From Entomortierella parvispora E1425 (taxonomy: Eukaryota > Fungi > Mortierellomycota), in the NCBI GenBank assembly GCA_020891255.1, contig BQFW01000001.1, forward strand, positions 1,178,001 to 1,242,000: a stretch of DNA of 64,000 nucleotides. Direction: 5' to 3'. The first letter of the stretch is position 1, and each line of letters opens with the position of its first letter. Both the position numbers and the translations under genes were made by a program. This document shows, in pieces, positions 950 through 32,870 of this stretch. A model generated the notes under the pieces. It saw nothing but the letters and a program-made list of their open reading frames with translations. It did not search any database and was not told the origin of the DNA.

Positions 950-3110
950 TTAGAGTACTGTGGGTCGTGTGTCGTAGTTGGGAAAGGGAGGGCTTGCCGG
1001 TCTTTGATACTGGTGCTGCAAGTTTGTCTGTTGCATTGAATGCCAGTGTTGTTCTTGGTGTTGTTGTTGAGGTGGGGCAACAGCAGACATGGACGAGGGC
1101 CATGGCTGAGTGAACTGCTGGAAAGAGGAGGAGTTGTGGGCCGCAGGTGGTGATGGGCCTGCATCGAAACCGCTTCTCGAGGGGTTCCAAGGCTGTCGGA
1201 GCAGGGCCGAGTCTCGTGCGCGCGGGAGTTGTGCAAGAACAAAACTTTGGTGCTCTCGGAATTGAGCCCCCAAAAGCTGTGATTGCCGTTCATGTTCTCG
1301 AGGGGAAATGGCCTCCAGGGCCGCTGCTACACCTGCCTTGACCACGTCGGCCGGATCGATAGGCATGGACGATTTTTCCTTCTGCATCCACTCGTCTGGA
1401 TTCCGGCCGTGGGACATGTACGACTGGGATGTGGTCGACCCTCGCCATTTCTGTCTCTCTTGCTCAAGAAACCCGGTCCTCATCGGTGTAGTCTCGAAAT
1501 CTCGAGATCCGTACGGAGACACAGCTCCATCTCCTTCGTGATGGTCCGTGCTGGACCATCCTTTAGTTTGAAATATAGGTTCAAGCCAATGTGCTCGCTT
1601 ACGACGGTAGAAGAACCCGGCGCCCATGGCTGTCAAAAGCAGAACTGCTCCCGCAATAGCACCACCGATGATTGCAGCTTGGTTGTGAGATCCACCATTT
1701 CTGCCACCATTCGGATCCAAGGTCTCGCCAGCAATTGGGATGGATGTGTCGCTTCTTCTGCGACCGGTGCTAGTCGTTACACTGACGCTGATTGTGGTAG
1801 GTGTTTTTAGCCAAGACGGTTTATATTCGTTCACGAATGTGTTGGCCTTGAGATCGAAAAGGAGGACGAGAGGCGCTACTGTGTATTCATCAACGCGACC
1901 TCCCCAATTGATCAGCGTGTCGTTAACTATAGTGCAGGCACTTTCATATCGAGGTTGAGAAGCAGAAGGACCTTGAGTCCAAGTCATAGTGGGCACGTCC
2001 AAGATCCATAATTCGCCCGTAAGCAACAAATTTGTTTCCAATCGCCCCCCAAATACAACGATCTTTGTTCCGTCTTCGTCTAATGCCATGATGAAAAATG
2101 AGCAGAGTTAGTCCATTAATGCAGAGCTTCATCCAAACAGTACTGTAAAGTGGATGAAGGTGACTCACTGGGTTCCATGCAGTGGCCGATTCTATTCGTT
2201 GGTTGTGGTCCTTGTGTCAACTGTGAAAATCAGATATGAATGAATCTTTGCATTTTTCACAAGAAAAAAAAAATAAAATAGAAAGAGCTCTGATCTTGCC
2301 TACCAGCGTTCTCCATGTGTTGTTTGCCGGTATGAATTCAATCAACTCAAGGTTTACTGGCGTCCCATACGTGCCATTCACAGATCGACCCGAGTACAGG
2401 AGGCTTTTCCGATAAGCCGAGTAGGCAACCGAATAATGTGCCCATCTCCCAAATGTCGACCCGATGTTTTCTGCTACTGTGCCAGCTGGGATAGGCACAG
2501 AGCTTATGATCGTATTCGCTACCATATCAAAGGAATACATATACTGCATGTTCTTAATCCCTATGTCACCCTCAGCCATATAGACCAGTCCAGTATCTCG
2601 ATCTTGAGCCGACAAGTAATCCAAGCGTGGCATGCTATCCGCCCTAAGTGTTACCAGCGTCCAAGCGTTCTGGACCGAGTTGTATCGAAGCTGATTCCTC
2701 CCAAATGTATTGAGATATTTTCCGTCCAACGAGACAGCCATGTACATGTACATGTACACGTCATCCAGGCTGTGTTGAAGCATCGACAAATTGGGCGGAC
2801 TGAGATTAGTCCAGACTGGCTTGCTGGCATTCCAAGTAGCAGTAAGATCCAAGGCAATGAACTGATTAATATATGAGGGCGTTGGATAGCCGGATGAATC
2901 AACAGAGTCTGTTGACATTCCGCCTAGGATAAGAAACTGTGTCTTTGTTGTTGCGGATACTGGCGAGTATGTTGAAAGATACTGGCCCTTCATCGGCGGA
3001 TATTGCGCAGAAACGGACACGTTGAATGGCACTAGCATCATTAGGATGATAGAGATCCATGAAAGATGGGCTACGCCAAACTGGTGCCGAGGCTCCCTGC
3101 AAACAGACAT
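950..3110 (-). CDS. K1: Kelch-like beta-propeller single-pass membrane protein (intact, ~662 aa)
   Basis: Exons 3110-2304, 2220-2169 (52 nt) and 2079-950, with GT-AG introns; 1989 nt in frame. Signal-like LSWISIILMMLVPFNVSVSA-Q; Kelch-type blades (FLILGG, IVVFGG..LWILDVPTMTWTQG, LINWGG); TM AAIIGGAIAGAVLLLTAMGAGFFY-RRKR; tail ends PPFPNYDTRPTVL. Start codon is uncertain. Confidence 0.85.
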
Positions 3111-3773
3111 TCTTGAGTGGACTTGTAGCAACCGTGCTCCTCTCAGTGTGTTAACAGAGATTCTCGTTTCAGGTGAAGGGATACGTTCCTCCAGCTGAAG
3201 AATGTTCAATTTTTTTGTGGTGGTCGGAGGAATTAGTGTCTTTACGTATTGAGAAGTGGGATGTGGTGGGAAAAGTGAAGCGGACCAGAGAGATGGAGTG
3301 GAGAGAAGGAAAAGTAGAGGCTTGATCCGCAACAAGAAGAAAAAGGCGGCTCTGCCGAGTCACTGACTCTCGCTCTCCCTCATTCCCAGGGCGTCCTCAC
3401 TTCCTGTGTGGTTTCTCCTATCCTGGACACGAAGACGTTGAGCGCTGAGATTTCTGTGCTGCTGTGCAACCTACTGTTTCGTGTTTTTTTTTGTTTTGTT
3501 TTTTTTTTCTGCTTTTCTGAGCATTTTTTTTTGCATGCATGCCCTATCCACCAGGCGTGTTTCCTTCATCTCTTCTCAACGCCATGAAATCAGAACGGAG
3601 GAAAGAGATAACACCCATACACACACGCAAAGAAAAATGGTACGTTCTGGCGTAGGTTTATTTCATCTCGTCATCATATTCTACTTTTGAGAGAGAACAA
3701 CATGCGCCAGTTGTGCTTGGAAGACCAGGATTTTTCTCTTCAAGATTTTATTTTCTCATAGCGGTGTTTCTCC

Positions 3774-5306
3774 TTAGGGCTGAGTGCTGTAGTTGAGAGG
3801 CGGTGGTGAACTGACTGGTCCTTGCTGATCTGGATGCACTTGTAATTTTTGCAGAAGCTGAAGTTGCTGGTGAAGTTGCTGCTGTTGCAAGTGCAACAGT
3901 TGGACCGATTGTCGGTACAGCTCTTCTTGTTGGTCTCGTTGAGGCAATGCTAAAGGAGAGACGGGTGAAGACCATTGCTGACCTTGGCACTGAGATGGCT
4001 GCTGGAAAGAGGAAGGAGTGGGGGGGACATCCGATGGCGCCACGATGCCAAAACTGTTCCAGGCCAGATCGGAGGGGTTCAAAGACTGTGGGAAAAGAGC
4101 CGAGTCTTGTACGTTCTGGATGTCTGTTTGAATACCTCTTTGGCGCTCTCGGAAACTAACCTCCAAAATCTGCAGCTGAAGCTCGCGCTCTCGAGGGGAA
4201 AGGGCACTTGCTTCCAGAGCAACCGCTACACCTGCCTTGAATGCGTTGGCCGGATCGATGGACATGGCCGCTTTTACCATCTGCATCCACTCGTCCGAGT
4301 TCCCTCCGCGAGACATGAACGGCTGGGATGCGGCAGAGCCTCGCCATTTCTGTCTCTCTTGTTCAAGGAATTCGGCCCTCATCGGTATGGCCTCCGAGTC
4401 AAGCCCAGTGTATTTAAATCCCAAAGAAAAATCTCTGCTGTCCCCAGTGCTGGACCATCCTTGAAAGATAGGCTTGCGTCTCTGTGCCTGCTTTCGACGG
4501 TAGAAGATAAGCCCGGCGCCAATAGCTATCAAGAGCATGGCTGCTCCTGCTGCCCCGACACCGACGACTGCAGCTTCGATGTGAAAGCTGTCTTTGTTAG
4601 AGCTGTTCGGATCCGGCGTCTCGCTGGCATTGGGAGCTGACGTGCCACTTCTACTACCGGTGGCGCTGCTGGCAGCTGGATTGATGCCAGTTGTGGCGGT
4701 GGATGTATTAGACCAAGTGGGTCTGTATTCGTTTACGAATGTGTTGGTCTTGAGGTCAAACAGTATAACGGGATATGCCACTGTATTTTTGCCCACGAGA
4801 CCTCCCCAGTTGATCAACATATTGTTAACTATAGTACAAGAACCCTTGGATCGAGGTTGAAGAGCAGACGGGCCTTGAGTCCAAGTCATAGTGGGCACGT
4901 CCAAGAACCACAGTTCGCTCGTAGGCAAAAAATCGGTAGTGTTGGCAGTCTCCAACTCCCCTCCGAATACAACGATCTTTGTTCCATCTTCGTCTAACAT
5001 TGTAAAATGAAGTCAATGAATTGGTATCCCATCCAACATTGTTGTGAAGGGGTTCTAAATGACTTACTGGATACCATGCAGTGACCTATTCTGTTTCTGG
5101 GTTGTTCTCCTTGTGCGAACTGTAGAATTAGACATGTATTCATGTATTTATCAAGTGTGCTTGGAACCCTATTCGCTCTACCAACAGATCGACCGGAGTA
5201 CAGAAGGCTTTTCCGATAAGTTGAGTAGACGGCCGAGTACACGTCCCACGCCGCAAATGGCGTCTCTATTTCATCCGGTAAAGTGCCCGATGGGATAGCG
5301 ACAGTG
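3774..5306 (-). pseudogene. K2: Kelch membrane-protein paralogue lacking its 5' ~two-thirds of exon 1 (fused to K3)
   Basis: Exon 3 (4993-3774) is open, with DEDGTKIVVFGG, a TM and ...PPPLNYSTQP*. Micro-exon 5119-5068 (FAQGEQPRNRIGHCMVS). Only VAIPSG...YSAVYSTYRKSLLYSGRS of exon 1 remains (~5306-5170), with no signal peptide and no intron-1 donor. Confidence 0.75.
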
Positions 5307-7005
5307 AGATTTCTAGATCCATAAAGAGATAATGTTCCTTCTCCATCATGGTCTCCGATAGCGGACCATCCTTGAGGCTGAAAGATAGGTTTACGACTAT
5401 GAGATCGCTTGCGGTGATAGAGGAAGAACCCGGCGCCAATGGCTATCAAGACCGATACCGCTCCTGCTGCACCACCACCAATGATTACAGCTTGGTTGTG
5501 AAGGTCATCATCGCTGCCAGCGTTCGGATCCAGGGTCTTACTAGCAATTGGGATGGCTGTGTGGCCTCTAATACCAACGGTACTCGTGGCTGAGCTGGTA
5601 CTGCTAGTGGTAGTGGATGTATCAGACCAAGTCGGTTTGTATTCGTCTACAAACTTATTCTTCGTGAGGTCGAAAAGGAGAATGAGAGGTGCCTCTACAC
5701 CAAAGTCCATTGTACCTCCCGAAACGATCAGGGCGTCATCAGCTATAGTGCAAACGCTGTATGCTCGAGGTCGAGGAGCAGGAGGGCCTTGGGTCCAAGT
5801 CATGGTAGGTACGTCCAAGATCCATAAATCTTGCCCGAGCACTCTATTTGTAAGATTGCCAGTATCCAACTGCCCTCCAAATACAACAACTTTTGTCCCG
5901 TCTTCGTCTGATACCATAATGAGAAAGAAGAACCGAGGCGTAAAAGTAGAGTTAGTGAAGGGCTTATTGATACTAGCTGTATATTTCACTTTGAAGAAAG
6001 TGGCGGACTCATTGGATGCTATGCAGGGAGATTCTCTGTTTCTTGGTCCTTGTCCTTGCACCAACTTTAAAAAAAATGGAATAAATGTTGGCATCTCAAC
6101 TTTCAAAAAAGAAAAAAAAAATGCAGAATGGCTCAGATATGCTTACCGGTCTTCCCCAGGTATTATTCTCGGGAATGAGTTCTGTCAACTCAAGTGGTCT
6201 TGGAGTCAAAGCCTCGCCAAGACGTTGGCCACTCAAAAACAGAAGACTCTTTCGATGAGATAAGTAAACAGGCGTACATAAATTCAACCAGCTTCCTGGC
6301 GCCATGCCGGCTGGGATGACTGCATTTCTCAGAAACTTATTTTCGACAAGATCAAATGAATGAATGCGCTGGTTATCATCCCCATCTCGAGCCCATTCTA
6401 ATAGCCATACCAGTCCAGTGTCTCGATCTTGAACTGTGTCATAACCGTGTGATCGTAGGCCATCGACCGTATCAGGCACTCCAGTCCAAGTTTTCTGGGT
6501 GAAGTCATATCGGAGGCCATTACTCCCATTCAGCTGCAGCTGCCCTCCAAATGTGTGGAGATATCTTCCATCCCGAGAGGCAGCCAAACACCCAAGAATC
6601 AGAATGACATTGAGGTCACTGTTTCAATATTTTGGTTGCTCCGACATTAGTCCAGACGGGTTTACTTGCGTTCCAGGCAGTGGTAAGGTCCAAGGCAATG
6701 ACTTGGACTAGATTCTCAGAATAGTCTTGAGGTGATTGGCCTATTGCGCTGGCTGAATTGCGTCCCTGGCTGCCTAGAATGAGAAACTGCGTTTTTGTAC
6801 TTGTGGATGCAGCCCAGTATGTAACGACATACTGGTCCTTTGATGGAGGATATTGCGCAGAAACCAAAACGCTGAATGACGTCAACATCAAGATGATGGC
6901 CAAACCATCGGAGACAGACCACAATAGGGTGGCATCGACGGTCCCTGCGAACTGATGCTCTTTCCTGCACCTGCGGGAATCGTGCTGCTTGTAGAGTGTC
7001 TTCAT
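5307..7005 (-). pseudogene. K3: Kelch membrane-protein paralogue, frameshifted and 3'-truncated
   Basis: Exon 1 (7005-6147) is 859 nt, with a +1 frameshift near 6620-6640 between ORFs 6616-7005 and 6096-6587. Micro-exon 6064-6013 has its donor mutated GT->AT (atgagt versus gtgagt in K1). Exon 3 starts at 5907 and is cut after ...LSLYGSRNL at ~5307. Confidence 0.75.
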
Positions 7006-7609
7006 TAGCCCTCATTTTATGTATCGGACTGCGTTGCCACAACTGAGACTTTGGAAATGTACTCAGGAAAGAGGGGGCGTTCTGACCATCAGTCAATGCG
7101 GAGCAGCGCCTGGGATGAAGTGGTGAAGTGAACAAGAGGACAAGGTGGAAAGAGCACTTGAGAGGCGGAGAGAAGTAAAAGAGGAAGAGAGGTTCATATT
7201 TCCAGAGAGGAGAAGAAAAGATGACTCTACCGAGGCGCCAGCCCTCTCCATTCCCAGGATTTTTTCGTCTCTTGGGTGTGGTTTATTTTCTCTTGAGAGT
7301 GAACACTTTTTTTTTTATTGACTGAACACGGTGCCATTGAGCACTTTCAACTTTCTGAGCACAATCATTGTTGTTTGCGTGCCCTACACATCAGAGGTGT
7401 TTCCTGCATATTTCCCAACGCCGTCAGGTTTACACAAAGAGGTAAAAAAAATAAAAGTTTGTACCGTTCGAGTTCATGGTACGTTTTTGGTTTTCTTGCT
7501 TTTATTCTGTTTTGGCGCATGCTCGAAGAGAGGACATGTTGCACCCGATGCTCTTATCACGCTTTCATTCTCTTCCTGCTTGATTTCCCATGAGTATCGT
7601 TTGTCTTCA

Positions 7610-8205
7610 AGCCCAATGTTTATGATTGAGAGGAGGCCGACTAACTGGTCCTTGCTGAGTTTGCTGAATCTGGAATGGTCGCGAAAACTGCTCTTGCTGG
7701 CGCTGCTGCTGCTGCGAAAGTTGCAGCTACTGCAGGTTCAAGAGTTGCATCGATTGGCGGTGACGCTCTTCCCGATGTTGTTGCTAAGGTGGAACCACAG
7801 TGAGGAGAGGTGACGATTGCTGGACGTGATGCTGAGATGCTGTGATTGAATAAAACTCTGACGATCTCGGAACTTGGACTCTAGGATCCACATCCGCAGC
7901 TTTCGCTCTCGAGGGGATAGGGTGCTTGATTCCAGAACTGAAGCTGCACCTGCCTTGAGTACGTTGTTGATTGACAGACATGACCCTCTCTCCGTCTGCT
8001 CCCACTCGTTCGTTCGGGTTCCCTCCATGAGCTGTGAATGACTGGGATGTGGCAGAATGTGGCAGATACTCGCCATGTCTGCCTCTCTTGCTTAAGAAAT
8101 TCGTCCCTCATCGTCATGATCTACGGTTTGGGACTGGCGTACTTGGATCCAAGAGCGCAATCTCTAGATCTGTAGAAAATGGAGGGTTTTCTCCGTCAGA
8201 AATTC
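7610..8205 (-). pseudogene. K4: remnant of Kelch-receptor cytoplasmic tail (copy A)
   Basis: Frame-broken matches to family motifs: SRDCALGSKY..MRDEFLKQERQTWR, KAGAASVLESSTLSPRERKLRMWILESKFRDRQSFIQ, QQGPVSRPPLNH. No TM or propeller lies upstream. Confidence 0.75.
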
Positions 8206-9825: not shown

Positions 9826-9831
9826 TATAAA
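9826..9831 (+). promoter_or_regulatory. Candidate TATA box of peptide gene P1
   Basis: TATAAG, positionally conserved with TATATAAAG at 13302-13310 in copy B. Followed by a conserved 5'-UTR containing a probable intron (9964 GTATGT..CAG 10060). Confidence 0.55.
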
Positions 9832-11279: not shown

Positions 11280-11905
11280 TCAGAGCCAAAGGCTATGATT
11301 ACGAGGAGGCGGACTGACTGGTCAATGTTGAGCCTGCTGAACCTGCTGAGCCTGCTGAATCTGCTGAGCCTGCTGAATCTGTAATGGTTCCGAAAACTGC
11401 TCTTGGTGGCGCTACTGCTGATGCGAAAGTTGCAGCAACTGCAGGTTCAAGAGTTGCATCGATTGGTGGTGACGCTCTTCCTAATTTGTTGCTGAGGTAG
11501 AACCAGAGGGAGGAGAGGTGACGATTGCTGGACGTGATGCTGAGATGCTGTGATTGAATAAAACTCTGACGATCCCGGAACTTGGACTCTAGGATCTACA
11601 ACAGCAGCTTCCACTCTCGAGGGGATAGGGTGCTTGATTCCAGAACCGAAGCTGCACCTGCCTTGAGTACGTTGTTGATTGACAGACATGACCCTCCTTC
11701 CATCTGCTCCCACTCGTTCGTTCGGGTTCCCTCCATGAGCTGTGAATGACTGGGATGTGGCAGAATGTGGCAGATACTCGCCATGTCTACCTCTCTTGCT
11801 TAAGAAATTCGTCCCTCATCGTCATGATCTACGGTTTGGGACTGGCGTACTTGGATCCAAGAGCGCAATCTCTAGATCTGTAGAAATGGAGGTTCCTCTC
11901 CGTCA
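11280..11905 (-). pseudogene. K5: remnant of Kelch-receptor cytoplasmic tail (copy B)
   Basis: Near-copy of 7610-8205: KAGAASVLESSTLSPREWKLLL and QQAQH*PVSPPPRNH. Confidence 0.75.
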
Positions 11906-13301
11906 GTAATTCGCCTGAACGTTACTTCAAGCACTGAACAAAATGGTTTAGGGTGGCCATGTGGAAAATACGAACGAGGGCGTCGAACGAGGGCGCGTCG
12001 AGATGGTGCGAGCGATGGATATGGATCTGGTACGATATGAGTGCGTCAGTCCAAGGACGGAGGGAAAGGGCGGGTGCAAGCAACGGGGATGGTGGATAAA
12101 GGGGAGCTTGAGGGTAGAGAGGGAAACGACAAAGGAACTGGAGATCTTGCGGTCTCAAGAAGCGGGCCAATGTTGAAGCGAGGACCTCACGAAAAAAAAG
12201 TTATTATGGGAGATGTGACCATGGATCCCGACAGTCTGAAGCGAGAATGTTTATCGGGGAGTAGGAAAATTATCAGTGGAAGCGACGAGGGCACTGATGG
12301 ACGAGTGCCCAAAGGCGGGACCAGAAGTTGCCTTCGTTCTATTTCTATCAACAAAAAACAAGAGATATTTAGATTCTCCGAGGACTAAAGTTCAGAAAAC
12401 CAGCCGATGAGTGATGACACGTTCACAAGCAGCGTCTCGTCCATGCACCCTTGATGTCAACACTGAACAGAACCCCATAGTGTTGAAGATGGCCTACACC
12501 AAAGTGTTGGATTTAGCGAAAAGGGTACATCCACTTTCTCTTAATTTTGCCGCTTTCTAAGGGCTCCGGATCCAAGCGTACGAAGCTTGAAAAGACCAAT
12601 AGAGCTCAGGACGTCGCCGCGGATCGTGAAGTCGCCCACAGAAGTAATCAGCAATTAAATACCAACTCCTACTCAGTCTGTGGGCGGAGAAGGAGGAGTA
12701 GGAGGAGGAGGAGGAGGAAAGACGGGGATTGGAGTGGCGGCGGCAGTGGTGCAAATCTGCCAGCATCATCAAAAATAACTCTAGCAAAGGATTGTACTAA
12801 AAGTCAAAAGGGATGCCGAAAAAGCAAGGGCCGGCACAAATGGGGGCAGAGAAAAGTAAGGGAAGAGAAGATGCAAAGATCCATGGCAGGGACAAATGGG
12901 GCAGAGAAAAGCAAGGGGAGAGAAGAGCCTGGGAAGCAAAAAAACCAAAAATAATGAGGATGGTGGCCGTAAGAGAAAAGACTGCAGAATATCTAAGAGG
13001 CACCGATCTAGGAGTGGTTAGCCCCTCCTCCTTCTTGTTTCGCCAACTTTCGGCAAGTTCGGATTGGCTGTGAAGATGGTGATGCAGAGAAAACAGAGAA
13101 ACACGACGGATGGGTTGAAAAAAGGGGCGAGCACCCGGGAAAACAGAGAAACGAAAAAATATGGCGCAGAAAAGATGAGGCCACAAGCTCCACAGTGGTT
13201 TTCTCTCCTGGTTTTCCTCGTTCATGTCCTCCCCCGAATTTCCTCTAGTTTCTTTGCATGGCCGATCGATTTGTGTAGTTTCATTTTCGACCCTATTCAC
13301 G

Positions 13302-13560: not shown

Positions 13561-13788
13561 ATGAAGTCACTGAGCATGGTTTTTGCCCTACTGCTGGCCT
13601 CGTTAAGCTTCAGCGCATGCATAGAAGCTGCAAAGGGATGTAGCCGTAGTGGGCACTGCTGGGCAAACTGCGGAACCACGCCTGCCGAATGGTGCTATAC
13701 TGGAGAATACGATTCCTACAAGTTCTGCAAAAACTCTGAAGATTGCCGGGATGATTTGCCATGCGTTGGTCGATGTGGTCAACTTTAG
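13561..13788 (+). CDS. P2: small secreted 8-Cys peptide (75 aa), Tha p 2-like
   Basis: Signal MKSLSMVFALLLASLSFSACIEA. Mature GCSRSGHCWANCG..EWCYTG..YKFCKNSEDC..LPCVGRC. Same Cys scaffold as P1. Confidence 0.9.
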   Translation: MKSLSMVFALLLASLSFSACIEAAKGCSRSGHCWANCGTTPAEWCYTGEYDSYKFCKNSEDCRDDLPCVGRCGQL

Positions 13789-17540: not shown

Positions 17541-19046
17541 TTACAAGGGTCGAGTGTTATAATTGAGGGGAGGAGGGGGACTAACCAGTCCGTGCTGGGC
17601 TTGTTGGACCTGCAATTGCTGCAAAAGATGTTGTTCTTGTTGTCGTTGCTGTTGCTGCAGAAGCTGTTGCTCTTGCAAGTGCATCAGTTGCATCGACTGT
17701 CGGTGCTGGTCGCCCTGATGCTGTTGTGGAAGAGAGGTCGCTGGGGAGAGGGGTATCGACCATCGCTGGCCTTGGTACTGAGCTTGAGCCTGGCCTTGGT
17801 GAGCTGGAGCCTGGCCCTGGTACTGGGATGAAGACTGGAAAGAGGAAGGGTTGATGGCAACAGCCAATGGTGCCCCTGTGCCAAAACTGTTCCGCGCCAC
17901 ACCAGAAGAGTTCAAGGACTGTCGGAAGAGGGCCGACTCTCGTTCGTTCTGACTCTCTGCTTGAATAAAACTCTGACGTTCTCGGAAACCTGCCTCTAAG
18001 ATCTGCAATTGAAGCTCGCGCTCTCGAGGGGAAATGGCAATTGCCTCCAGAGCCGCCGCAGCGCCAGCCTTGAACGCGTCGGCCGGGTCGATGGATGAGG
18101 CTGTCTTCTCCATCGACATCCGATCGTATGGGCTACCACCGGAGGACATGTACCCCTGGGGTGTGGTCGAGCCGCGCCACTTCTGTCTCTCTTGTTCAAG
18201 GAACTCGGCTCTCATAGGAATGGTCTCGGAGTTGAGACTATTGTATCGGGATCTTTTTTCGTAGGAAGAGAGAGTCTCATCCCCATCTTGATCCCCGGTG
18301 CTGGACCATTCTCTTGATTGAAAGGCAGGCCTGCGTGTGCGTGTTCGCTTTCGTCGGTAGAAAAAGAACCCAGCACCCGCGGCTGACAATAGCAAGACAG
18401 CTCCTGCGGCACCGCCACCGATGATTGCAGTTTGGTTGTTTGAGCTGTCTTTGACATCACTGCTCATGTCCAGGTTTCCGCTCATCGTGGGGGTGGGCGT
18501 AACAGTTCCAGTACTGCTCGTACTGGTGGCTGCGCTGGTGGTTTTGGTGGACGTGTCAGGCCAGGTCGGTTTGTACTGATCCACGAATGTGTTTGTCTTG
18601 AGGTCGAAAAGGAGGATGGGAAGCGACTCCGCAGGAACACCATTGAAGCCTCCCCAATTGATCAACGTATCGTTAACTATAGTACAGGCACTCCCGTATC
18701 GAGGCTCTGGGGCAGGAGGGCCTTGCGTCCAGGACATAGAGGGAACGTCTAAGATCCATAGCTCGTTTGTATACGTTGCATCTATTGAGTTGATAGTGGG
18801 CAGTCCCCCGCCAAATACAACGACCTTTGTTCCATCTTCGTCTGATGTCAGGAAGCAAAAGCATATCCGTAGGAGTAGAGTTAGTCTATTGGTAACAGAA
18901 CGCCTTGCATGCATCGTCTTGACATAGCGATAGACTCACTGGATGCCACGCACGGGTAGACTTTGGCACTTGGTCCACCTTCTTGTACCGACTGGATATT
19001 TGTATAAAAGGAATAAAAGGTATTTAACCGTCTGTGCTCTTTTCAC

Positions 19047-19084
<38 letters not shown>

Positions 19085-19986
19085 AGAAAAAAAAATAAGG
19101 TCGAAGGAGCAAAGACTCTGCTTACCAGACTTGCCCAGGCATTACTCGTGGGAATGTATTCTGTCAGCACTAACGGGGTTGGTGTCTGATACTGAGTAGC
19201 ACCCAAATACAGAAAGCTCTTCCTGTATGCCGAGTAGACAACTGAACACAGCGGATTTATCATTGTCGACGAAAGTCCATGTGGTGTTGACACGACTGGG
19301 ATCAGCCAACCATCTGTGATGTTATTCTTTGCGATGTCAAAAGAATACATGTACTGCGTGAAATTCGCGTCTCCATTGAGCTCAGCTACGTACACTAGTC
19401 CCGTTTCTGGATCTTGGGCTGCTCTGAAAGTAGGATCAGACATGAAGTTTGTCTCCGCTGGCGACATAGTCCAAGTTTTATCGGCAAACGTGTATTGAAG
19501 GCTGATTGGAGATTCGGGTCCTGCATCTGTTAACCCTCCGAACGTATTGATATGTTTTCCGTCCAATGAGACGGCCAGCAAGCCGTCGATTAGGAGGATC
19601 TCGTGGCCTAGGTATCTAGGCGGAACAATATCAGCCCAGATTGGTTGGGTGGCATTCCAAGGAACGGTGAGGTCCAAGGCTATAAACTGATTGATCGGTG
19701 TAGACTCTGGGTGGCCATTTTTGTCCATAGAGACAGTAACTCCACCAAGGATGAAAAACTGTGTCTTTGAAGCTGTGGTCAAGGGTGCAGCTGTCACCAC
19801 ATACGGGGTTGCTGGTAGGGACTGTGCAGAAGCTGAGGTGCTGAATGACACTAGTATCAAGGTGCCGACAAGTAGCCACAAAAGACAAGCTGCGAAAGAA
19901 TCGTTTCGACGACCATTGTGAGCTGTTGTTCTTTCCGGGACCCGTGGGAACCGTGCCCCTGATAAGGTGTTTCCGAAGGTGCCCAT
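17541..19986 (-). CDS. K7: Kelch single-pass membrane protein (intact, ~737 aa)
   Basis: Exons 19986-19126, 18991-18940 and 18841-17541; 2214 nt in frame. Signal ...TLILVSFSTSASA-Q, TM IIGGGAAGAVLLLSAAGAGFFFY-RRKR, end PPPPLNYNTRPL. Confidence 0.9.
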
Positions 19987-20621: not shown

Positions 20622-22103
20622 CTAGGGTCGGGTGTTATAGTTGAGGGGGGGAGGGGGACTGGCCAGTCCTTGCTGAGCTTGCTGAACCTGTAATTGATGC
20701 AAAAGATGTTGTTCTTGCTGTTGTTGCTGTTGCTGCAGAAGCTGTTGCTCTTGCAAGTGCATCAGTTGCATCGACTGTCGGTGCTGGTCGCCCTGAAGCT
20801 GTTGTGGAAGAGAGGTCGCTGGAGAGAGGGGTGTCGACCATTGCTGGCCTTGGTACTGAGCTGGAGCCTGGCCCTGGTACTGGGATGAAGACTGGAAAGG
20901 GGAAGGGTTGATGGCAACAGCCAATGGTGCCCCTGTGCCAAAACTGTTCCGCGCCACACCAGAAGAGTTCAAGGACTGTCGGAAGAGGGCCGACTCTCGT
21001 TCGTTCTGACTCTCTGCTTGAATAAAACTCTGACGTTCTCGGAAACCTGCCTCTAAGATCTGCAATTGAAGCTCGCGCTCTCGAGGGGAAATGGCAATTG
21101 CCTCCAGAGCCGCCGCAGCGCCAGCCTTGAACGCGTCGGCCGGGTCGATGGATGAGGCTGTCTTCTCCATCGACATCCGATCGTATGGGCTACCACCGGA
21201 GGACATGTACCCCTGGGGTGTGGTCGAGCCGCGCCACTTCTGTCTCTCTTGTTCAAGGAACTCGGCTCTCATAGGAATGGTCTCGGAGTTGAGACTATTG
21301 TATCGGGATCTTTTTTCGTAGGAAGAGAGAGTCTCATCCCCATCTTGATCCCCGGTGCTGGACCATTCTCTTGATTGAAAGGCAGGCCTGCGTGTGCGTG
21401 TTCGCTTTCGTCGGTAGAAAAAGAACCCAGCACCCGCGGCTGACAATAGCAAGACAGCTCCTGCGGCACCGCCACCGATGATTGCAGTTTGGTTGTTTGA
21501 GCTGTCTTTGACATCACTGCTCATGTCCAGGTTTCCGCTCATCGTGGGGGTGGGCGTAACAGTTCCAGTACTGCTCGTACTGGTGGCTGCGCTGGTGGTT
21601 TTGGTGGACGTGTCAGGCCAGGTCGGTTTGTACTGATCCACGAATGTGTTTGTCTTGAGGTCGAAAAGGAGGATGGGAAGCGACTCCGCAGGAACACCAT
21701 TGAAGCCTCCCCAATTGATCAACGTATCGTTAACTATAGTACAGGCACTCCCGTATCGAGGCTCTGGGGCAGGAGGGCCTTGCGTCCAGGACATAGAGGG
21801 AACGTCTAAGATCCATAGCTCGTTTGTATACGTTGCATCTATTGAGTTGATAGTGGGCAGTCCCCCGCCAAATACAACGACCTTTGTTCCATCTTCGTCT
21901 GATGTCAGGAAGCAAAAGCATATCCGTAGGAGTAGAGTTAGTCTATTGGTAACAGAACGCCTTGCATGCATCGTCTTGACATAGCGATAGACTCACTGGA
22001 TGCCACGCACGGGTAGACTTTGGCACTTGGTCCACCTTCTTGTACCGACTGGATATTTGTATAAAAGGAATAAAAGGTATTTAACCGTCTGTGCTCTTTT
22101 CAC

Positions 22104-22141
<38 letters not shown>

Positions 22142-23051
22142 AGAAAAAAAATAAGGTCGAAGGAGCAAAGACTCTGCTTACCAGACTTGCCCAGGTACCG
22201 CTCGCGGGAATGTATTCTGTCAGCACTAACGGGGTTGGTGTCTGATACTGAGTAGCACCCAAATACAGAAAGCTTTTCCTGTATGCCGAGTGGACAACTG
22301 AACACCCCGGATTTATCATTGTCGACGAAAGTCCATGTGGTGTTGACACGACTGGGATCATCGATGCATCTGCAATAATGTTATTCTTTGGGATATCAAA
22401 AGAATACATGTACTGCACAACACTCGCGTTTCCATTGAGCTCAGCTACGTACACTAGCCCCGTCGCTGGATCTTGGACTGATATGAAAGTAGCATTAGGT
22501 ATGGCGCTTGCCTCCGCTGGCGACATAATCCAAGTTTTATCGGCAAACGTGTATTGAAGGCTGAATGGATATGTGGGTCCTTCGTCTCTAAACCCTCCAA
22601 ATGCATTGATATGTTTTCCGTCGAACGAGACGGCGAGCGAGCCGCCGTTTCCATTGGCTAGGAAGAGCTCTTGGTTTTGGTATCTAGGCGGACCAATATT
22701 AGTCCAGACTGGCTGGCTGGCATTCCAAGGAACGGTGAGATCCAAGGTGATAAACTGATCGATTGGTGATTGTTGGTTGCCATTTTTTTCCGGAGAGAAA
22801 ACAACTCCACCCAGGATGAAAAACTGTGTCTTTGAAGCTGTAGACAAGGCTCCAGCTGTCACCACATACGGGGTTGTTGGTAGAGACTGTGCAGAAGCTG
22901 AGGTAGTGAATGACACTAGTATCAAGGTGCTGACAAGTAGCCACAAAAGACAAGCTGCGAAAGAATCGTTTCGACGGCCATTGTGAGCTGTTGTTCTTTC
23001 CGGGACCCGTGGGAACCGTGCCCCTGAAAAGGTGTTTCTGAAGGTGCCCAT
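20622..23051 (-). CDS. K8: Kelch single-pass membrane protein (intact, ~732 aa)
   Basis: Exons 23051-22182, 22048-21997 and 21898-20622; 2199 nt in frame. Exon 3 is almost identical to that of K7. Confidence 0.9.
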
Positions 23052-23709: not shown

Positions 23710-26151
23710 TTAGGGTCGGGTGTTATAGTTGAGGGGGGGAGGGGGACTGGCCAGTCCTTGCTGAGCTTGCTGAACCTGTAATTGATGCAAAAGATGTTGT
23801 TCTTGCTGTTGTTGCTGTTGCTGCAAAAGCTGTTGCTCTTGCAAGTGCATCAGTTGCATCGACTGTCGGTGCTGGTCGCCCTGATGCTGTTGTGGAAGAG
23901 AGGTCACTGGAGAGAGGGGTGTCGACCATCGCTGGCCTTGGTACTGAGCTTGAGCCTGGCCTTGGTGAGCTGGAGCCTGGCCCTGGTGCTGGGATGAAGA
24001 CTTGAAAGGGGAAGGGTTGATGGCAACAGCCAATGGTGCCCCTGTGCCAAAACTGTTCCGGGTCACACCAGAAGAGTTTAGCGACTGTCGGAAGAGGGCC
24101 GACTCTCGTGCGTTCTGACTCTCTGCCTGAATAAAACTCTGACGCTCTCGGAAACCTGCCTCTAAGATCTGCAATTGAAGCTCGCGCTCTCGAGGGGAAA
24201 TGGCACTTGCCTCCAGAGCAGCCGCAGCGCCAGCCTTGAACGCGTCGGCCGGATCGATGGATGAGGCTGTCTTCTTCACCGACATCCGATCGTATGGGCT
24301 ACCGCCCTGGGATATGTACCCCTGGGATGTGGTTGAGCCTCGCCACTTCTGTCTCTCTTGTTCAAGGAACTCGGCCCTCATGGGAATGGTCTCGGAGTTG
24401 AAACTAGCGTATCTGGCTCTTTTTTCGTAGGAAGAGAGAGCCTCATCCCCATCGTGATCCCCGGTACTGGACCATTCTCTTGATTGAAACAGAGGCCTGC
24501 GTCTGCGTGTTCGCTTTCGTCGGTAGAAAAAGAATCCGGCACCTGCGGCTGACAATAACAAGACAGCTCCTGCGGCGCCGCCGCCGATGATTGTAGTTTG
24601 GTTGTTTGGGCTGTCTTTGTTGTCGCTGTTCATGTCCAGATTTCCGCTCATCGTGGGGGTGGATGTAGCAGTTTCAGTACTGCCCGCACTGGTGACTGCG
24701 CTGGTGGTTTTGGTGGACGTGTCAGGCCAGGTCGGCTTGTACTGATCCACGAATGTGTTTGTCTTGAGGTCGAAAAGTAGGATGGGAAGCGACTCCGTAG
24801 CAACACCATTGAAGCCTCCCCAATTGATCAACGTATCGTTAACTATAGTACAGGCACTTCCGAATCGAGGCTCAGGGGCAGGAGGGCCTCGCCTCCAGGA
24901 CATTGAGGTAACATCCAAGATCCATAGCTCATTTGTAAAAACTGGGCGTGATGCGTTGATATGGAGCAGTCGCCCGCCAAATAAGACGATCTTTGTTCCA
25001 TCTTCGTCTGACGTCATGAAGCAAAAAGAATATCCGTAGGAGTAGAGTTAGTCAATTGGTAACAGAACGTCTTACAGTCTCGTCTTGACATAGCGATAGA
25101 CTCACTGGATGCCATGCATGAGGCGGTCCTGGCACTTGGTCCACTTCCTTGTATCAACTGGATATTTGTAATAAAAGAAATAAAAGTAAGCACCAGTGAT
25201 CTTTCCATCAAAAAAAAAAAGGAAAAAAAAAAAAGAGAGAGAAAAAAATAAGGTCGAACGAGCAAAGACTCTGCTTACCAGACTTGCCCAGGTATCACTC
25301 GCGGGAATGTATTCTGTCAGCACCAATGGACGTGGTGTCGTAAGCAGAGTAGTATCCAAATACAGAAAACTCTTCCTGTGTGCCGTGTAGACAACTGAAC
25401 ACTCCGGATTTATCATTGTCGATGAAAGTCCCTGTGGTGTTGACGATGGGATCATCAAAACAGCTGCGATGTTATTCTTTGCGATATCAAAAGAATACAT
25501 GTCCTGTGTGAATCTCCCCCACGCGTCCCAACCGAACTGAGCTACGTACGCTAGCCCTGTCGCTGGATCTTGGACCGCTGTGAAAGCACCAATTGGTACG
25601 GTGCTTGCCTTGGTTGGCGACAAAGTCCAAGTTTTATCAGCAAACGTGTATTGAAAGCTCGTTGAATTTAAGGGTCCTACTCTTCCTAACCCTCCAAATG
25701 CATTGATATGTTTTCCGTCCAACGAGACGACCAGCGAGCCGGGGATTTGCCTAAGCAGGACAAGCTCTTGGTTTTGGTATCTAGGTGGACCAATATTAGT
25801 CCAGACTGGTTGGCTGGCGTTCCAGGGAAGAGTGAGGTCCAAGGCGATAAACTGATTGATCGGTGTAGGCTCTAGGTAGCCATTTTTATCCATAGAGAAA
25901 GCAAATCCACCCAGGATGAAAAACTGTGTCTTTGAAGCTGTAGACAAGGGTACAGCTGTCACCACATACGGGGTTGTTGGAAGAGACTGTGCAGAAGCTG
26001 AGGCGCTGAATGACACTAGTATCAAGGTGCTGACAAGTAGCCACGAAAGATAGGCTGCGAGAGAATCGTTTCGACGGCCATTGTGAGCTGTTGTTCTTTC
26101 CGGGACTCGTGGGAACCGTGCCCCTGAAAAGGTGTTTCTGAAGGTGCCCAT
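23710..26151 (-). CDS. K9: Kelch single-pass membrane protein (intact, ~740 aa)
   Basis: Exons 26151-25279, 25157-25106 and 25007-23710; 2223 nt in frame. Same architecture as K7 and K8. Confidence 0.9.
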
Positions 26152-26825: not shown

Positions 26826-29181
26826 TTATCCCCTGGGTCGAGTGCTGTAATTGAGAGGGGGTGGACTGACTGGTCCTTGTGGGGTTTGTTGTATGAGGGA
26901 TTGCTGTTGCTGTTGCTGTTGCTGCTGACTCCATGGTTGACGCGGCGGTTCTGGTTGTGGTTGTTGTTGTATTGTCATTGAAGAGACAGGCGAAGGCCAC
27001 TGCTGTTGCTCGTATCGAGGCGAGAACGATTGTTGCTGATATTGTTGCTGCTGATAGGGCAGCTGGTTCACCAAGGTCGATGGTGTGCCCACAAGACTGC
27101 TTGTGGTTGTCCGTACAGAGTCTGGAGAGTTCAAAACAGAGTCCCGTGGCTGCTGTTTAGGATCGTGAGCGGATGGAGAATTTGCCGCGGCCGCTAGTCC
27201 AGTACCGAACCCATTGGTGAAACCCGTAGCGATTCTGGCATTCTCCTTTTGCATCCATTCATCCTTGTCTCCTGTTGTGACTGGGTACGGTCGTGATGGA
27301 TTCGAGCCCCGCCACCATTGTTTTTCCTCTTCATGAAACTCTTCCTTCATCGGCACGACCTCTGGACCAGATTCGCCATGTCTATAAGATGGAACGAAGC
27401 CAAGCAATGCTGTCTCTAGTCGGGGCGCAGTGGACTGGCTATAGGATCCATCAACCTCTGCGTTTTTTCCTTGACCATCACTGCCACTGCCACGATCCGG
27501 ATCTTTTGCCTGGAAGACCGCCTTCCACCGAAGAGGCCGTTTCCTGCGGTAGAAAAAGAACCCGGCGCCAATGATGGCAGCTAGAATGACCACGCTGGCG
27601 ATGCTGCCACCAATGACAGCCCCCTTGTTCTTGCTACCCCCTGTCGATGAGGTATCGGTGCTGTTGTGTCCATCTCCTCCAGTCGGCTTGGGCAGTGGCA
27701 AGGTCTTTGGTGGTGGTGTAGGTTTGTACTCTGTGATAAACTTGTTGGTCTTGAGGCTGTAAAGGAGTAAATCGACTGGCTGAGGATACAAACCATTGTA
27801 GCCTCCCCAATTGATCAGTGTATCGTTCATGATGGTGCAGGCACTTCCAGCACGAGCCTGAGAGGCAGCGGGACCTTGGGTCCAAGTCATAGACGGCACA
27901 TCAAGGACCCAAAGATCGTTTGCAAACACCCCGGTGTCGAGAGCTCCTCCAAGAACAACAATTTTGGTTCCGCCGGCATCTATACGGAGTGGATGCCATA
28001 TCCATTTTAAGGTCGGTCCGTCAGTCCTTCATTCAGTCCATCGCCGTATTTTCTTTTCTATGAAAGGTCCTTTTGAACGGAGAGGAGAAGGAGAGCACGA
28101 AAGGGAGATACTTACTGGTCACCATGCACTGGAGTGCTCTATGACTGGGTCCTGTTCCCTGTGTGTTCTATGATAATACATTTCATTTCTTGCAAGATTA
28201 GATGAAAGATCTCTAAATACATTTTTTTTTTTTTTTTTTTAAAAAAAAAGTCTCTTCTTACCGCTATCGACCAGGTATTGGTCGCAGGCACATACTCGGT
28301 GATCAAGCCTGGCACTGGACTCGTATCGTTGACTATACTCTGGCCACCGTAGAACAACAGACTCTGCCTATAGGACGTATACACCACCGAGTAATAACCC
28401 GTTCGGTCAGGCCACAAGGCCACCGTGCTGCCGGGTATCAGGGCCGGAATCGTCAAGTTTTTGACAATCGAGTCCGAATCGAAATCATAGACCAGCAGAC
28501 TGTTGTAGGTCGAGTTGCCGTATCCACCCGGCAGATACACCAAACCCGTATCCGTATCCTGAGCCACCTGGCGATCATACACGTTCGGGGCGGTGGCCAT
28601 GATGCTCGAGGCCGTCCAGGTCCCGGTCGCAAACGTGTACCGATACGACAGCACTTTACTTAAAAAGTTGGAGCCAAACGTGTTGAGGTACTTTCCATCC
28701 TGGGAGAGGACGATCGAAGGCGCGGCCAGAGTCGGTCCTGCGATGGCCATGGTGGGATCCGCAGGTCCTACGCCAGCACTCCCGTTCGATTTTAAGGCCG
28801 CCCACACGGGCCGACTGGCATTCCATGGGACGGTGAGATCCAAGGCATCAACTGATTTGCAAACGGAGCGGTGCTGCTAATGCTAAAGTTGGAAGCGGTC
28901 ACCACGAATCCGTTCATGATGATGAGCTTGGTTTTGGTGCTGACAGATCCGGGTATAACCGTTGTTTGATAAGAACCCGTGGATGGAGGAGCTACCTGTG
29001 CATAACCGCCCGAGAACTGCAGCGACAACAGAAAAACAAAGAACCACACGAGCGAGGTAACAGAGATCAAGCGACGGTGGCGTTGTGGCGGTTGGACAAG
29101 AGTTGTGAGAGAGGTAGCCGTCATTTTCAAGGATGATGCTGTGAGTGGAGACCTTGAAAGGGATTGGCGAGGATCACTCAT
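26826..29181 (-). pseudogene. K10: divergent Kelch membrane-protein paralogue with a single 1-bp frameshift
   Basis: Exons 29181-28262 (920 nt), 28167-28116 and 27979-26826. 'cag ttg at- gcc ttg gat ctc' at ~28857 lacks one base of the conserved NQ(F/L)IALDLT motif. Otherwise open; ends PPPLNYSTRPRG. Could be a sequencing error. Confidence 0.7.
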
Positions 29182-29832: not shown

Positions 29833-32800
29833 TCAGTAGAAACTGTCATGGCTACCTCCTGCTGAACGGGGTCGGGTATTCTGGTTGAGCAGAGGCGGAC
29901 TGGACAGACCTCGCTGCTGCTCACGTAGTTCTTGCAACTCGAGCTGGCGCATCTGGAGCTGGATCTGTTGTTGCTGCAATTGCATATGCTTGATCAATTG
30001 CTGACGCTGATCCTCTTGCTGCTGTTGTTGTTGCAACGTTGAAATAGTGGACGGTGATAGCGGTGCTGTGAACAATGGCTGTGAATGATATCGTGGCGGT
30101 GCGGCCATTTGTTGCTGTTGAAGTTGTTGTTGCAATTGCTGCTGCTGCTGCTGTTGTTGTTGCTGGTATAATTGCAATTGCAACTGCTTTTGCAGCCTGA
30201 GCTTTTCCTCCTCCTGCTGCTGCTTCTTGAGCTTTTCCTCTTGTTGTTGTTGCTGCTGCAAGACTAACCGTTGTTGCTGGAGTTTCTCTTGATGCTGCTG
30301 TTGCAAGATCAACCGTTGCTGGTGTTGCTGTTGAAGCTTCTCTTGCTGCTGCTGTTGCTTGAGCTTCTCTAGTTGCCGTTTCTGCTGCTGGAGCAACTGC
30401 TGCTGCTGTTGTTGTTGGAGAAGCTGTTGTTGCTGCTGTAATTGCTGCTGCTGCTGCTGTTGTTGCAATTGCTGCTGATGTTGAATCTGCTGAGAAGTCA
30501 TTTGTTGGTAGACAGTCGGGGGCGTACTCGAATGGGACGAGACCATCCTGGATTTGGAAGATTCAGGAGAGCCTTTGGACGTGGCCGCCTGGGATTCTCG
30601 CAACATTATCACATCTCGATCGCGCTGTTGCAGCAAGATCATGTTTTGCTGTTCTCGGATTTGAGTCTCCAAGAGCTGCATCTGCAGTTCTCGCTCTCTT
30701 GGCGTCATGGTGCTGGTGGCAGCCGCGGCTGCTGCCCCGGCCTTGAAGGCCTTGGCAGGGTCAATGTAGAGCCGATCATTGTCCATCTGGTACCATTCTT
30801 CATGGTCCCCGCGCGTGGTCGCCGTCAGAATTGGCTGTGAGACCACTCTTCGGCTATCTTGGGAGTAAAACTTTGTGGACATGGCAATCTGAGGCTCTGG
30901 ACTGAGCTCCTCCTGTCGATAGGCTGGCAAGAACCCAAGGATCGCGGTGTCAAGCCGAGGGGGAGGGGAAGCTGAAAAATGGGACCCGGCTCCAGCAGAG
31001 CCAAGAGAACCAGCCAACAGGCCTTGAGGTGAGTCCTTTTCATACCCAATGAAGCCGTCGTCCTCTGACTGGTCATTTCGGTCATAAAGAGTACTGCCCG
31101 CCGTTGAAAGGACTCTTGATTTCCTGGGGAGAGCAGCGGCGGCGGTCTGTTTCCTCCGCCGACGTCGGCAAAGCAGAATCGAGCAAACAATCGCGACCAA
31201 AACAACAGCACCACCAGCACTCCCGCCAATAATGGCTCCAGCATTTAGCATGCCAGACTGACTAGAGGACGTGCTGGGAGAGTTGACGGGAGGTGGGGGT
31301 AGTTGAACATTGGATGGAGCGTAGTTGGTAACGAATGCATTGGTGAGAAAGTCAAAAATAACGATGGTGGTGTTTTGAGGGTCACTGCCACTAAAGCCGC
31401 CCCAGTTGATCAGGGTGTTGTTGACAAAGGTGCACACACTGCCGGCTCGTGGTTCAGGCGCAGTAGGACCCTGGGTCCAAGTCATGGTGGCCACATCCAA
31501 GACCCAAAGATCGGCCGCATATGCGTTACCGGCCAATATTCCTCCAAAGACGACTACTTTTGTTCCGTTATCATCTTCATACAAAAATAAAAAAGAAAGA
31601 GTTACTCAATCAGTCCAACCATGAAAAAAGAACTTTCGTGGGTACCAGTTCATCGCCATCCATCTCCAGAATGTATGCCCTTCGCCCCCAGTTCCTCAAA
31701 CTTTTTGATGTCCGCAAAGTCACACAGAGCTCTTTGTGGTTTTGTGTTTTGCCGTTGAGTTGCATTTTTCATGCACTGAAAGAGAATGACTCTGGACCAG
31801 GGGGAAGAAGGAACTTACTGGCTGCCATGCACATGCTGTTTCGAAGACTCGGTCCCCCACCCTGGACAACCTATGATAGCAAACCAAAAAAAAAAAAAAG
31901 TTAATCGTCAAAGTGTCGTTCCTCCCTTCCTCCCCCTTCTCCCAAAAATGCATGCAGGAAAAAACATGTCAAATTTCCTTACGGGTGTACCCCACGTATT
32001 GTTGCTCGGGACGTATTCCGTGAGGAGGTTTGGAGAGGCTGCAATGAGACTGATATTCGAAGGGACCCCGCCCCAGTAAAGAAAGCTGTTTCGAACCGCC
32101 GTGTAGATAACGCCATAGCCTAGTCGTTCTGTCAGATAAGGGTATGTTTGTCCTGGACCCAACGTGGTGGTGATGAGCAGATTCGAAACAATGTTGTCCG
32201 TGACGAAATCGTACACCATAAAAGTGTTGTCCTTGGTTTGAAACCCTCCCGCGAGATACACATATCCATTCGCCGGGTCCTCCACAGCCTGTACGCCAGT
32301 CTTGTTGACTAAGGGCGCCGTCACCTGGGAAGGTGCCCAGATGCCGGTTTCGAACGTGTACCGGTACGAGAGATGTGAGCTCAGATTGTTGGCCCCAAAA
32401 GTGTTGAGATATTGTCCATCTGGAGAGAGGGCCATGGTCGCCATCATGAGTTTTGGACCTCCTGCGCTCAAGGCCGCGTCTGGAGCAGATCCGTTGGCTG
32501 GACCCGTCCCGAGTCGAGTCCAGACAGGGGACGTGTTGACCCAAGGCACCGTGAGGTTCAAAGAGATCAGTTGACTAATGACAGGTCCATTCTTTGCGGT
32601 CGAGTTGTTGATGGCCATTCCGCCCATGATAACAAACTGGGTCTTTGTCCGGATGGCGGAAGCATATGTTGTTACCGAGTAGGGAATTTGTGCAGCCGAT
32701 ACTGTGAGACCTGTGAGTGCTATTGAGGAGAGGAGGGCCACCACGATCCAAGAGAGAAAAAACATGGGTGCTAGTTGCAGTCCATGGCTGCGTCGACTAT

Positions 32801-32870
32801 GAACTGCTGTCGAGATAATCGCTGCCCTTTTTGACCTCGACCCTTCCTGTGCTGGATGATATTCAGTCAT
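29833..32870 (-). CDS. K11: divergent Kelch single-pass membrane protein with long polyQ tail (intact, ~893 aa)
   Basis: Exons 32870-31983, 31870-31819 and 31574-29833; 2682 nt in frame. Signal FFLSWIVVALLSSIALTGLTVSAA-Q, TM AIIGGSAGGAVVLVAIVCSILLC-RRRRRK, conserved IDPAKAFKAGAAAAA..PRERELQMQLLE, ~170-aa Q-rich tract. Confidence 0.9.

Follow-up and report, generated by a model that had tools for sequence, protein, structure and literature searches.

A tandem cluster of Kelch-propeller genes in Entomortierella parvispora predicted to encode single-pass surface proteins

Introduction

The yeast wall sensors Wsc1-3, Mid2 and Mtl1 share a layout of signal peptide, head, Ser/Thr-rich stalk, single transmembrane (TM) helix and non-enzymatic tail. 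Attractin, attractin-like 1 and MEGF8 are animal type I single-pass proteins that combine an extracellular Kelch propeller with a short non-catalytic tail. Here, we describe a tandem cluster of genes whose predicted products resemble each of these groups in part. It occupies positions 950-32870 of a 64,000-nucleotide stretch (the window) of contig BQFW01000001 of Entomortierella parvispora E1425 (Mortierellomycota; assembly GCA_020891255.1), and all coordinates are window positions unless another contig is named. The copies are named A to I by order of transcription, with copy D as the reference. The genome is a 409x Nanopore assembly, Illumina-polished, of a strain that naturally carries an endobacterium (PMC8759367).

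The likeness to Wsc1-3, Mid2 and Mtl1 is one of layout: the head of the array proteins is a Kelch propeller and not a WSC domain, there is zero sequence similarity, and the array is multi-copy and fast-evolving. Membership of the WSC/Mid2 sensors was rejected, with neither a WSC nor a Mid2 Pfam match and only the overall layout alike. Compared with attractin and MEGF8, the array proteins are far smaller and have no CUB, EGF, PSI, C-lectin or laminin-EGF domains; they carry a mucin-like stalk, and their tail is unrelated. The propeller model PF24981 (Beta-prop_ATRN-LZTR1) reaches 59 bits in copy I and attractin-like 1 is among the Foldseek matches, but membership of this group was also rejected, because only the propeller Pfam model matches and the tail alignment contains no MASRPF-type motif.

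By fold and sequence profile the nearest solved structures are KLHDC2/3/10, Keap1/KLHL12 and the plant specifier proteins ESP/TFP/NSP, all with the same six-bladed Kelch fold; these are, however, cytosolic substrate receptors or enzyme cofactors without signal peptide or TM helix, and share 13-18% identity with the array proteins. The best match in reviewed UniProt is ARB_01230 of the ascomycete Trichophyton benhamiae (D4AYG1, 668 residues), which has an N-terminal Kelch propeller comparable in size to that of the array proteins (Foldseek E 2.6e-14, 21% identity, query-normalised template-modelling score [TM-score] 0.66); the tails are dissimilar. A search of the literature for characterised fungal Kelch-ectodomain membrane proteins returned nothing relevant.

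We propose, with a probability of roughly 0.6, that the locus is a genuine, transcribed tandem cluster of paralogues encoding type I membrane glycoproteins that bind ligands at the cell surface. The structure and evolution of the locus are well supported, and what they document is a known domain architecture that has expanded within one lineage, not a demonstrated new signalling system.

Results

Array organization and gene models

Copies were found by tblastn with the spliced 732-residue product of copy D. All long open reading frames within 950-33344 are on the minus strand, and between 950 and 32870 that strand holds nine gene-like copies and two tail-only remnants (11 elements) of one three-exon gene, as follows:

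32870..29833, minus strand: copy A, intact, 893 residues; exons 32870-31983, 31870-31819 and 31574-29833
29181..26826 (about), minus strand: copy B (EMPS_00321), probable pseudogene; three-exon structure retained, exon 1 frameshift near 28830
26151..23710, minus strand: copy C (EMPS_00320), intact, 740 residues; exons 26151-25279, 25157-25106 and 25007-23710
23051..20622, minus strand: copy D (EMPS_00319), intact, 732 residues; exons 23051-22182, 22048-21997 and 21898-20622
19986..17541, minus strand: copy E (EMPS_00318), intact, 737 residues; located by tblastn
16945..14676, minus strand: copy F (EMPS_00317), damaged; homology extends to 14607
11918..11548, minus strand: tail-only remnant with stops, within duplicated cassette 2
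8147..7840, minus strand: tail-only remnant, within duplicated cassette 1
7005..5264 (about), minus strand: copy G, pseudogene, ending at about residue 520
5260..3774 (about), minus strand: copy H, 5'-truncated and fused to G, the two annotated jointly as EMPS_00315
3110..950, minus strand: copy I (EMPS_00314), intact, 662 residues with Met 3110; exons 3110-2304, 2220-2169 and 2079-950

An exon 1, a 52-55-nt exon 2 and an exon 3 are common to all full-length copies, with intervals of 3041, 3065 and 3100 bp between successive start codons from F through E and D to C, in agreement with the period of about 3.0-3.1 kb noted in a first-pass annotation of the window. That annotation counted 11 same-strand copies; the number of elements and the strand hold, but only nine are gene-like and two are tail remnants. 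It also described five intact copies and graded decay of the remainder, as we find (A, C, D, E and I intact; B, F, G and H damaged, each by another route), and its further statement that all copies share every feature applies to the intact copies only, because of the lesions in the other four.

Copy A is the most diverged paralogue, with a long, glutamine-rich, coiled-coil tail. In exon 1 of copy B a frameshift of 1 nt is apparent against its orthologue, gene X2 of the metagenomic contig L003 described below, whose exon 1 runs uninterrupted; copy B is a probable pseudogene, unless the frameshift is a residual assembly error. In copy F an 11-codon in-frame deletion has removed the RRKR stop-transfer sequence, and premature stops lie close to the C-terminus. 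Copy G is interrupted in exon 1 by a stop and frameshifts, its intron 2 donor reads AT in place of GT, and the sequence breaks off at about residue 520; copy H retains only the final ~45 codons of exon 1 together with exon 3.

The existing annotation covers the array with locus tags EMPS_00314 to EMPS_00321, and several of its models contain errors: EMPS_00315 joins G exon 3 to H in a chimera, the start of EMPS_00314 is placed at an internal Met, exon 2 is missing from EMPS_00317, and EMPS_00321 lacks its N-terminus as a result of the copy B frameshift. A poly-T tract of ~35 bases lies within intron 1 of both D and E (22100-22140 and 19050-19085), which is shorter and interrupted in copy C; in D and E this tract is a possible hotspot for slippage or mis-assembly.

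Assembly support and transcription

Run X1 provides Illumina DNA contigs of the same sample, which span the C-D region with a k-mer depth of about 90-130 where exon 1 is copy-specific, rising to about 200 over the stretch identical in D and E. The doubled depth is as expected from two separate copies. Collapse of the array as an assembly artefact, which the first-pass annotation had named as a risk, is thus countered as far as these depths and the 409x Nanopore assembly can test it.

Transcription is indicated by run X2, in which coverage falls on gene bodies and exons only and is zero over 23022-23797. It contains spliced joints at 21898>21997 and 22048>22182 in copy D and at 25007>25106 and 25157>25279 in copy C, all GT..AG on the minus strand and all absent from run X1. 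Because these joints match both predicted introns of each copy, transcripts of C and D are made, and their splicing agrees with the gene models. Run X2 is probably the published RNA sequencing (RNA-seq) library of the genome announcement, as judged from the behaviour of the run alone. No RNA run is listed for copy C, and the evidence for expression is run X2. Other runs under the same species label contain 0.00-0.01 of the gene D words, with no control gene compared.

Predicted protein architecture

The products of the intact copies begin with a signal peptide, followed by a six-bladed Kelch propeller and a Ser/Thr stalk; a single TM helix with an RRKR stop-transfer sequence then leads into a cytoplasmic tail of 260-420 residues. 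The ectodomain is a beta-propeller of ~350 residues with two conserved Cys and N-glycosylation sequons (3-12 N-x-S/T sites per ectodomain), and the TM helix is Gly/Ala-rich (AIIGGGAAGAVLLLSAAGAGFFFY) and followed by RRKRTRTRR. A type I orientation fits both the positive-inside rule and the number of sequons in the ectodomain. The general picture drawn at first pass, of single-pass, receptor-like Kelch-propeller products with a conserved non-enzymatic tail, is supported.

Only Kelch families exceed the cut-offs in a Pfam scan. Copy D scores 36.9 bits for Kelch_6 (cut-off 25.3), 27.1 for Kelch_2 (21.3) and 54.2 for PF24681 (50), and copy I reaches 76.4 bits for the last of these; there is no kinase or TIR match, as the first-pass annotation had anticipated. 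The sequence contains six blade signatures of the 'hhhhGG' type (FFILGG, INAFGG, LVYVAE, FLYLGA, VVVFGG and LINWGG). An AlphaFold2 model of residues 50-405, built from a 67-row family alignment, is a Kelch propeller of 28 strands with a predicted local distance difference test score (pLDDT) of 85.3 and a predicted template-modelling score (pTM) of 0.89; it replaces a full-length model from a five-row alignment, which was set aside (pLDDT 35.6). The top Foldseek matches are six-bladed Kelch domains (E about 1e-13, probability 1.00), and by motif scores and fold alike the products are members of the Kelch beta-propeller superfamily.

UniRef names some of the copies 'Galactose oxidase', and Kelch_3/4 were formerly described as 'galactose oxidase central domain', so that the products could be taken for membrane-bound copper radical oxidases (galactose/glyoxal oxidase, AA5). 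We give this reading next to no credence. The array propeller has six blades, as against seven in copper radical oxidases, and neither Glyoxal_oxid_N (PF07250) nor DUF1929 (PF09118) matches even at E<=1. Among 67 family members the ectodomain residues that are invariant, or nearly so, comprise G, W, P, L, D, Q, R, one Tyr and two Cys but include no His, and the sole conserved Tyr (residue 201 of D, Y152 of the model) is located away from both conserved Cys. Oxidases account for none of the 50 best Foldseek matches and none of the 60 best Protein Data Bank (PDB) sequence matches. With no conserved His and no oxidase-domain match the automatic name is wrong, and assignment to this enzyme family, which the first-pass annotation had named as a refutation of its reading, is excluded by Pfam, conserved residues and fold.

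A large Mortierellaceae family

A profile of the copies was searched exhaustively (HMMER) against 1.84 billion representatives, giving 2971 matches at E<=1e-3, 960 at 1e-10 and 203 clusters at 1e-30. The profile positions matched are typically about 40-480, corresponding to the propeller, stalk, TM helix and stop-transfer sequence, and a TM-like segment follows the propeller in 132 of 145 matches. Thirty of the best matches were looked up: all 24 that carry a name are from Mortierellaceae (Mortierella, Linnemannia, Podila, Gryganskiella and Entomortierella), three of them from elsewhere in the same genome or window, and the six without a name are mostly metagenomic proteins. Relatives such as KAG0216516.1 (Mortierella sp. 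GBA30), KAF9567711.1 (M. alpina), EMPS_09768 and EMPS_03884 have a homologous propeller, stalk, TM helix and stop-transfer sequence (E 1e-92 to 1e-33). With a propeller followed by a stalk and, near residues 350-450, a TM helix, the array proteins are members of a Mortierellaceae family of Kelch-ectodomain single-pass proteins.

The array was at first regarded as orphan, an impression also given by a word-index search with exon 3, which returned same-genome copies only. The exhaustive profile search overturns it, in that the ectodomain and TM helix have 203 clusters of relatives at E<1e-30 and only the tail is clade-restricted. Judged from these matches, the propeller and TM module belongs to a very large, uncharacterised Mortierellaceae family. 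Feature-based and structural look-ups suggest similar architectures in Zoopagomycota, Basidiomycota, Ascomycota and Glomeromycotina.

Tandem arrangement recurs in the family. Several relatives have over-long gene models that contain two to six TM segments, and in Mortierella sp. GBA30 (L001:9758-16067) three tandem family members lie in another genomic setting, between isocitrate dehydrogenase and Argonaute genes; tandem arrays are therefore usual and have arisen repeatedly. Mortierellaceae relatives annotated as 'Kelch repeat-containing' or 'Galactose oxidase' are often tandem and are uncharacterised, and their tails are unrelated to those of the array. Many of them end in NP[HQ]: this motif is present in the last 25 residues of 22 of 145 Mortierellaceae relatives (shuffles: mean 1.95, maximum 8) and looks like a family-wide C-terminal linear motif, in place of which the array has SPPPLNYxTRP.

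The cytoplasmic tail

The tail consists of predicted helices and a glutamine-rich helix or segment, with no enzymatic domain, and includes the motifs PMRAEFLEQERQKWRGS, IDPAxAFKAG, SPRERELQxQxLE and the C-terminal SPPPLNYxTRP. Tails can be aligned across A, B, C-I and genes X1-X3 of L003, and thus across both species, the alignment containing E-x-x-PM-x-x-x-F, W-x-Q-x-[ED]-N, IDPAxAFKAG, SPRERELQxQxLExx[FI]RExQ and, at the C-terminus, SPPPLN[YQ]xTRP. Searches of protein databases, including profile searches, did not find the tail (residues about 480-645) outside this array and its metagenomic relative; there were zero Pfam matches, and a PDB profile search at E<=10 matched nothing solved. One apparent full-length profile match, P0137, was rejected as a tail homologue after pairwise BLASTP with copy D. 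Unlike the propeller and TM module, the cytoplasmic tail is, by these searches, clade-restricted.

Selection and gene conversion

Ratios of nonsynonymous to synonymous substitution (dN/dS) were calculated by the Nei-Gojobori method. Among C, D and E the ectodomain has a dN/dS of 0.82-0.96 (sub-blocks up to 1.2) and the cytoplasmic part 0.23-0.39; the ectodomain thus evolves faster than the tail, and replacements are in excess in the ectodomain over the tail (Fisher p 0.002-0.06). In the older pairs D-F and D-I the values are 0.37-0.47 for the ectodomain and 0.18-0.25 for the cytoplasmic part. Over all comparisons the tail stays at 0.14-0.39, a constraint that argues for specific cytosolic partners.

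Divergence is distributed as a mosaic. D and E have zero nucleotide differences from exon 2 to codon ~640 and promoters that are 99-100% identical, and between these 99-100% identical flanks lies an exon 1 block of about 0.8 kb with 79-88% identity and a dS of about 0.17. Over most of the 3' end and flank, copies C and D share 98-100% identity, as against 46-73% between D and E. No donor for the exon 1 block of copy E closer than D was found in the protein database. On the evidence of the alignments, this mosaic identity is a signature of unequal crossover or gene conversion that retained a divergent propeller block. The D/E mosaic is compatible with selection for diversity, short of proof.

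Expansion of the C-I block

The chitin synthase gene found beside the array is also present, at 83% nucleotide identity, on a related metagenomic contig of 13 kb (L003), where it adjoins only three Kelch genes (X1, X2 and X3). Nucleotide identity of the Kelch genes between E. parvispora and L003 is 66-74%, compared with 83% for the neighbouring gene. A maximum-likelihood tree of exon 3 groups A with X1 and B with X2 (each 100/100), and X3 with all of C-I (93/92). From the number of copies in L003 and the tree, A and B are old 1:1 orthologues and C-I is a lineage expansion. The C-I block (seven copies and two remnants) would thus have expanded in the E. parvispora lineage or, less parsimoniously, collapsed in the relative.

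The first-pass annotation had inferred birth-and-death evolution and had taken stable 1:1 orthology as evidence that would count against it. Birth-and-death evolution is upheld by the lineage-specific C-I expansion, by pseudogenes that have decayed to differing degrees and by gene conversion that left a mosaic; 1:1 orthology does hold for A and B across the two species, and not for C-I.

Part of the block consists of a composite cassette (~3.6 kb) that is tandemly duplicated, with 6947-8955 corresponding to 10601-12689 and 9700-10139 to 13181-13620 at 79-82% nucleotide identity. It contains the 5' end of a receptor gene, a tail remnant, unrelated DNA and a peptide gene. The peptides, encoded antisense to the array, have no Pfam family and are absent from L003:

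10080..10316, plus strand: secreted 8-Cys peptide gene (EMPS_00316), nested antisense in the array
13561..13788, plus strand: 8-Cys peptide paralogue, 52% amino acid identity to EMPS_00316

Neighbouring genes

Beyond base 1 of the window, on L002, are a chitin synthase gene, an F-box-like gene of 494 residues and a further, more distant Kelch-TM family member, just outside the window, so that the family extends past the interval first reported. An RSN1_7TM gene lies on the opposite flank of the array:

L002:12654-16530: chitin synthase
L002:17279-18763: F-box-like gene
L002:20177-22092: Kelch-TM family member
33915-37160, minus strand: RSN1_7TM (CSC1/OSCA-type channel) gene

The chitin synthase and RSN1_7TM genes, both related to the wall or to mechanosensing, thus bracket the array, possibly by coincidence.

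Discussion

We slightly favour a function as a cell-surface ligand-binding sensor or adhesion family, in which a stalk, TM helix and tail of Wsc/Mid2-like layout carry a Kelch head. The proteins would be located at the cell surface, where the propeller would bind an extracellular ligand (a wall polymer, a glycan or a protein) with a specificity that diversifies among copies, and the constrained tail may link occupancy or mechanical load to cytosolic partners or endocytosis. The C-I block itself arose by tandem duplication in the E. parvispora lineage, continues to be reshuffled by unequal crossover and gene conversion, and is in partial decay.

Several observations weigh against this interpretation. 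The ectodomain dN/dS among the young copies is about 1 and not above 1, so that relaxed constraint explains it equally well as diversifying selection, and predicted loops hold no significant excess of the sites that vary among C, D and E (p 0.3-0.6). A long N-terminal stretch precedes the hydrophobic segment, which could be a signal anchor instead of a cleaved signal peptide. Run X2 is catalogued as 'DNA?' and its status as RNA-seq comes from its behaviour, and the frameshift in copy B could be a Nanopore or Pilon error.

A role in sensing wall integrity and a role as a recognition repertoire are special cases of the surface-sensor reading, and neutral amplification is the null alternative to it. 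If the proteins act as cell-wall integrity sensors or mechanosensors like Wsc1-3 and Mid2, the propeller would be a wall anchor, the O-mannosylated stalk a spring, and the tail a site that recruits a Rho guanine nucleotide exchange factor. Both kinds of protein run from a signal peptide and head through a Ser/Thr stalk and single TM helix to a short non-catalytic tail, and a chitin synthase gene and an RSN1_7TM/CSC1-type channel gene flank the cluster. We nevertheless hold this to be unlikely, if credible: no WSC domain was found in the Pfam scan, the tail resembles nothing solved, the neighbouring genes may be coincidental, and housekeeping sensors are usually few and stable, and do not normally form arrays of ten copies in which members decay and the head evolves near-neutrally. 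An unremarkable segmental duplication would require only that one ancestral gene, of some everyday membrane function, was amplified by unequal crossover and that redundant copies drift to pseudogenes under relaxed constraint. Damage to four of the nine gene-like copies, the two remnants, a dN/dS of about 1 in young copies against 0.34-0.47 in older comparisons, and the single copy that a related species has in place of C-I are all in keeping with this; the tails of the young copies are still under purifying selection (dN/dS 0.2-0.4), however, C and D are transcribed and correctly spliced, and arrays recur in other Mortierellaceae (three copies in L001; fused multi-TM models), which makes drift by itself a rather doubtful account.

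The array might also be a repertoire for non-self recognition, in which exon 1 diversity is selected for innate immunity (against bacteria, mycoparasites or nematodes), recognition of Mycoavidus, allorecognition or mating-type-like compatibility. Lineage-specific copy number and pseudogenes speak for such a system, as does an ectodomain dN/dS near 1 with a constrained tail; the divergent exon 1 block of ~0.8 kb between nearly identical flanks in D and E, for which the protein database holds no closer donor, and the endobacterium carried naturally by the strain point the same way. Yet dN/dS fails to rise above 1 and the block has a high dS as well, a pattern for which older sequence and homogenised flanks suffice; the lack of enrichment in loops and the conservation of A and B as 1:1 orthologues fit poorly, the Pfam scan found no death, TIR, NACHT, HET or kinase modules, and hundreds of Mortierellaceae relatives point to a more general surface role. 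We judge this improbable, and an immune or allorecognition role is speculation. Its most specific form is a long shot: that C-I are a somatically invariant, fast-evolving repertoire of non-self receptors, with the exon 1 propeller block kept diverse by selection, with promoter, stalk, TM helix and tail homogenised by conversion, and with the fast-diverging 8-Cys peptides as possible cognate ligands. If that were true, C-I would be a fungal receptor-ligand recognition locus without kinases or NOD-like receptors (NLRs), and its targets would be endobacteria such as Mycoavidus, mycoparasites, or conspecific hyphae or gametangia.

The reading of the cluster as a family of surface sensors or adhesion proteins bears on the biology of a widespread group. 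Mortierellaceae rank with the most common fungi of soil, endobacteria live in many of them, and little is known of how they sense partners, enemies and their own wall. The genes described here belong to an abundant, uncharacterised family that is expressed, duplicates and decays quickly, and evolves fast outside the cell while being constrained and clade-specific inside it, and the misleading 'galactose oxidase' annotations of its members are corrected. The family is thus a tractable candidate for a fungal surface-receptor repertoire.

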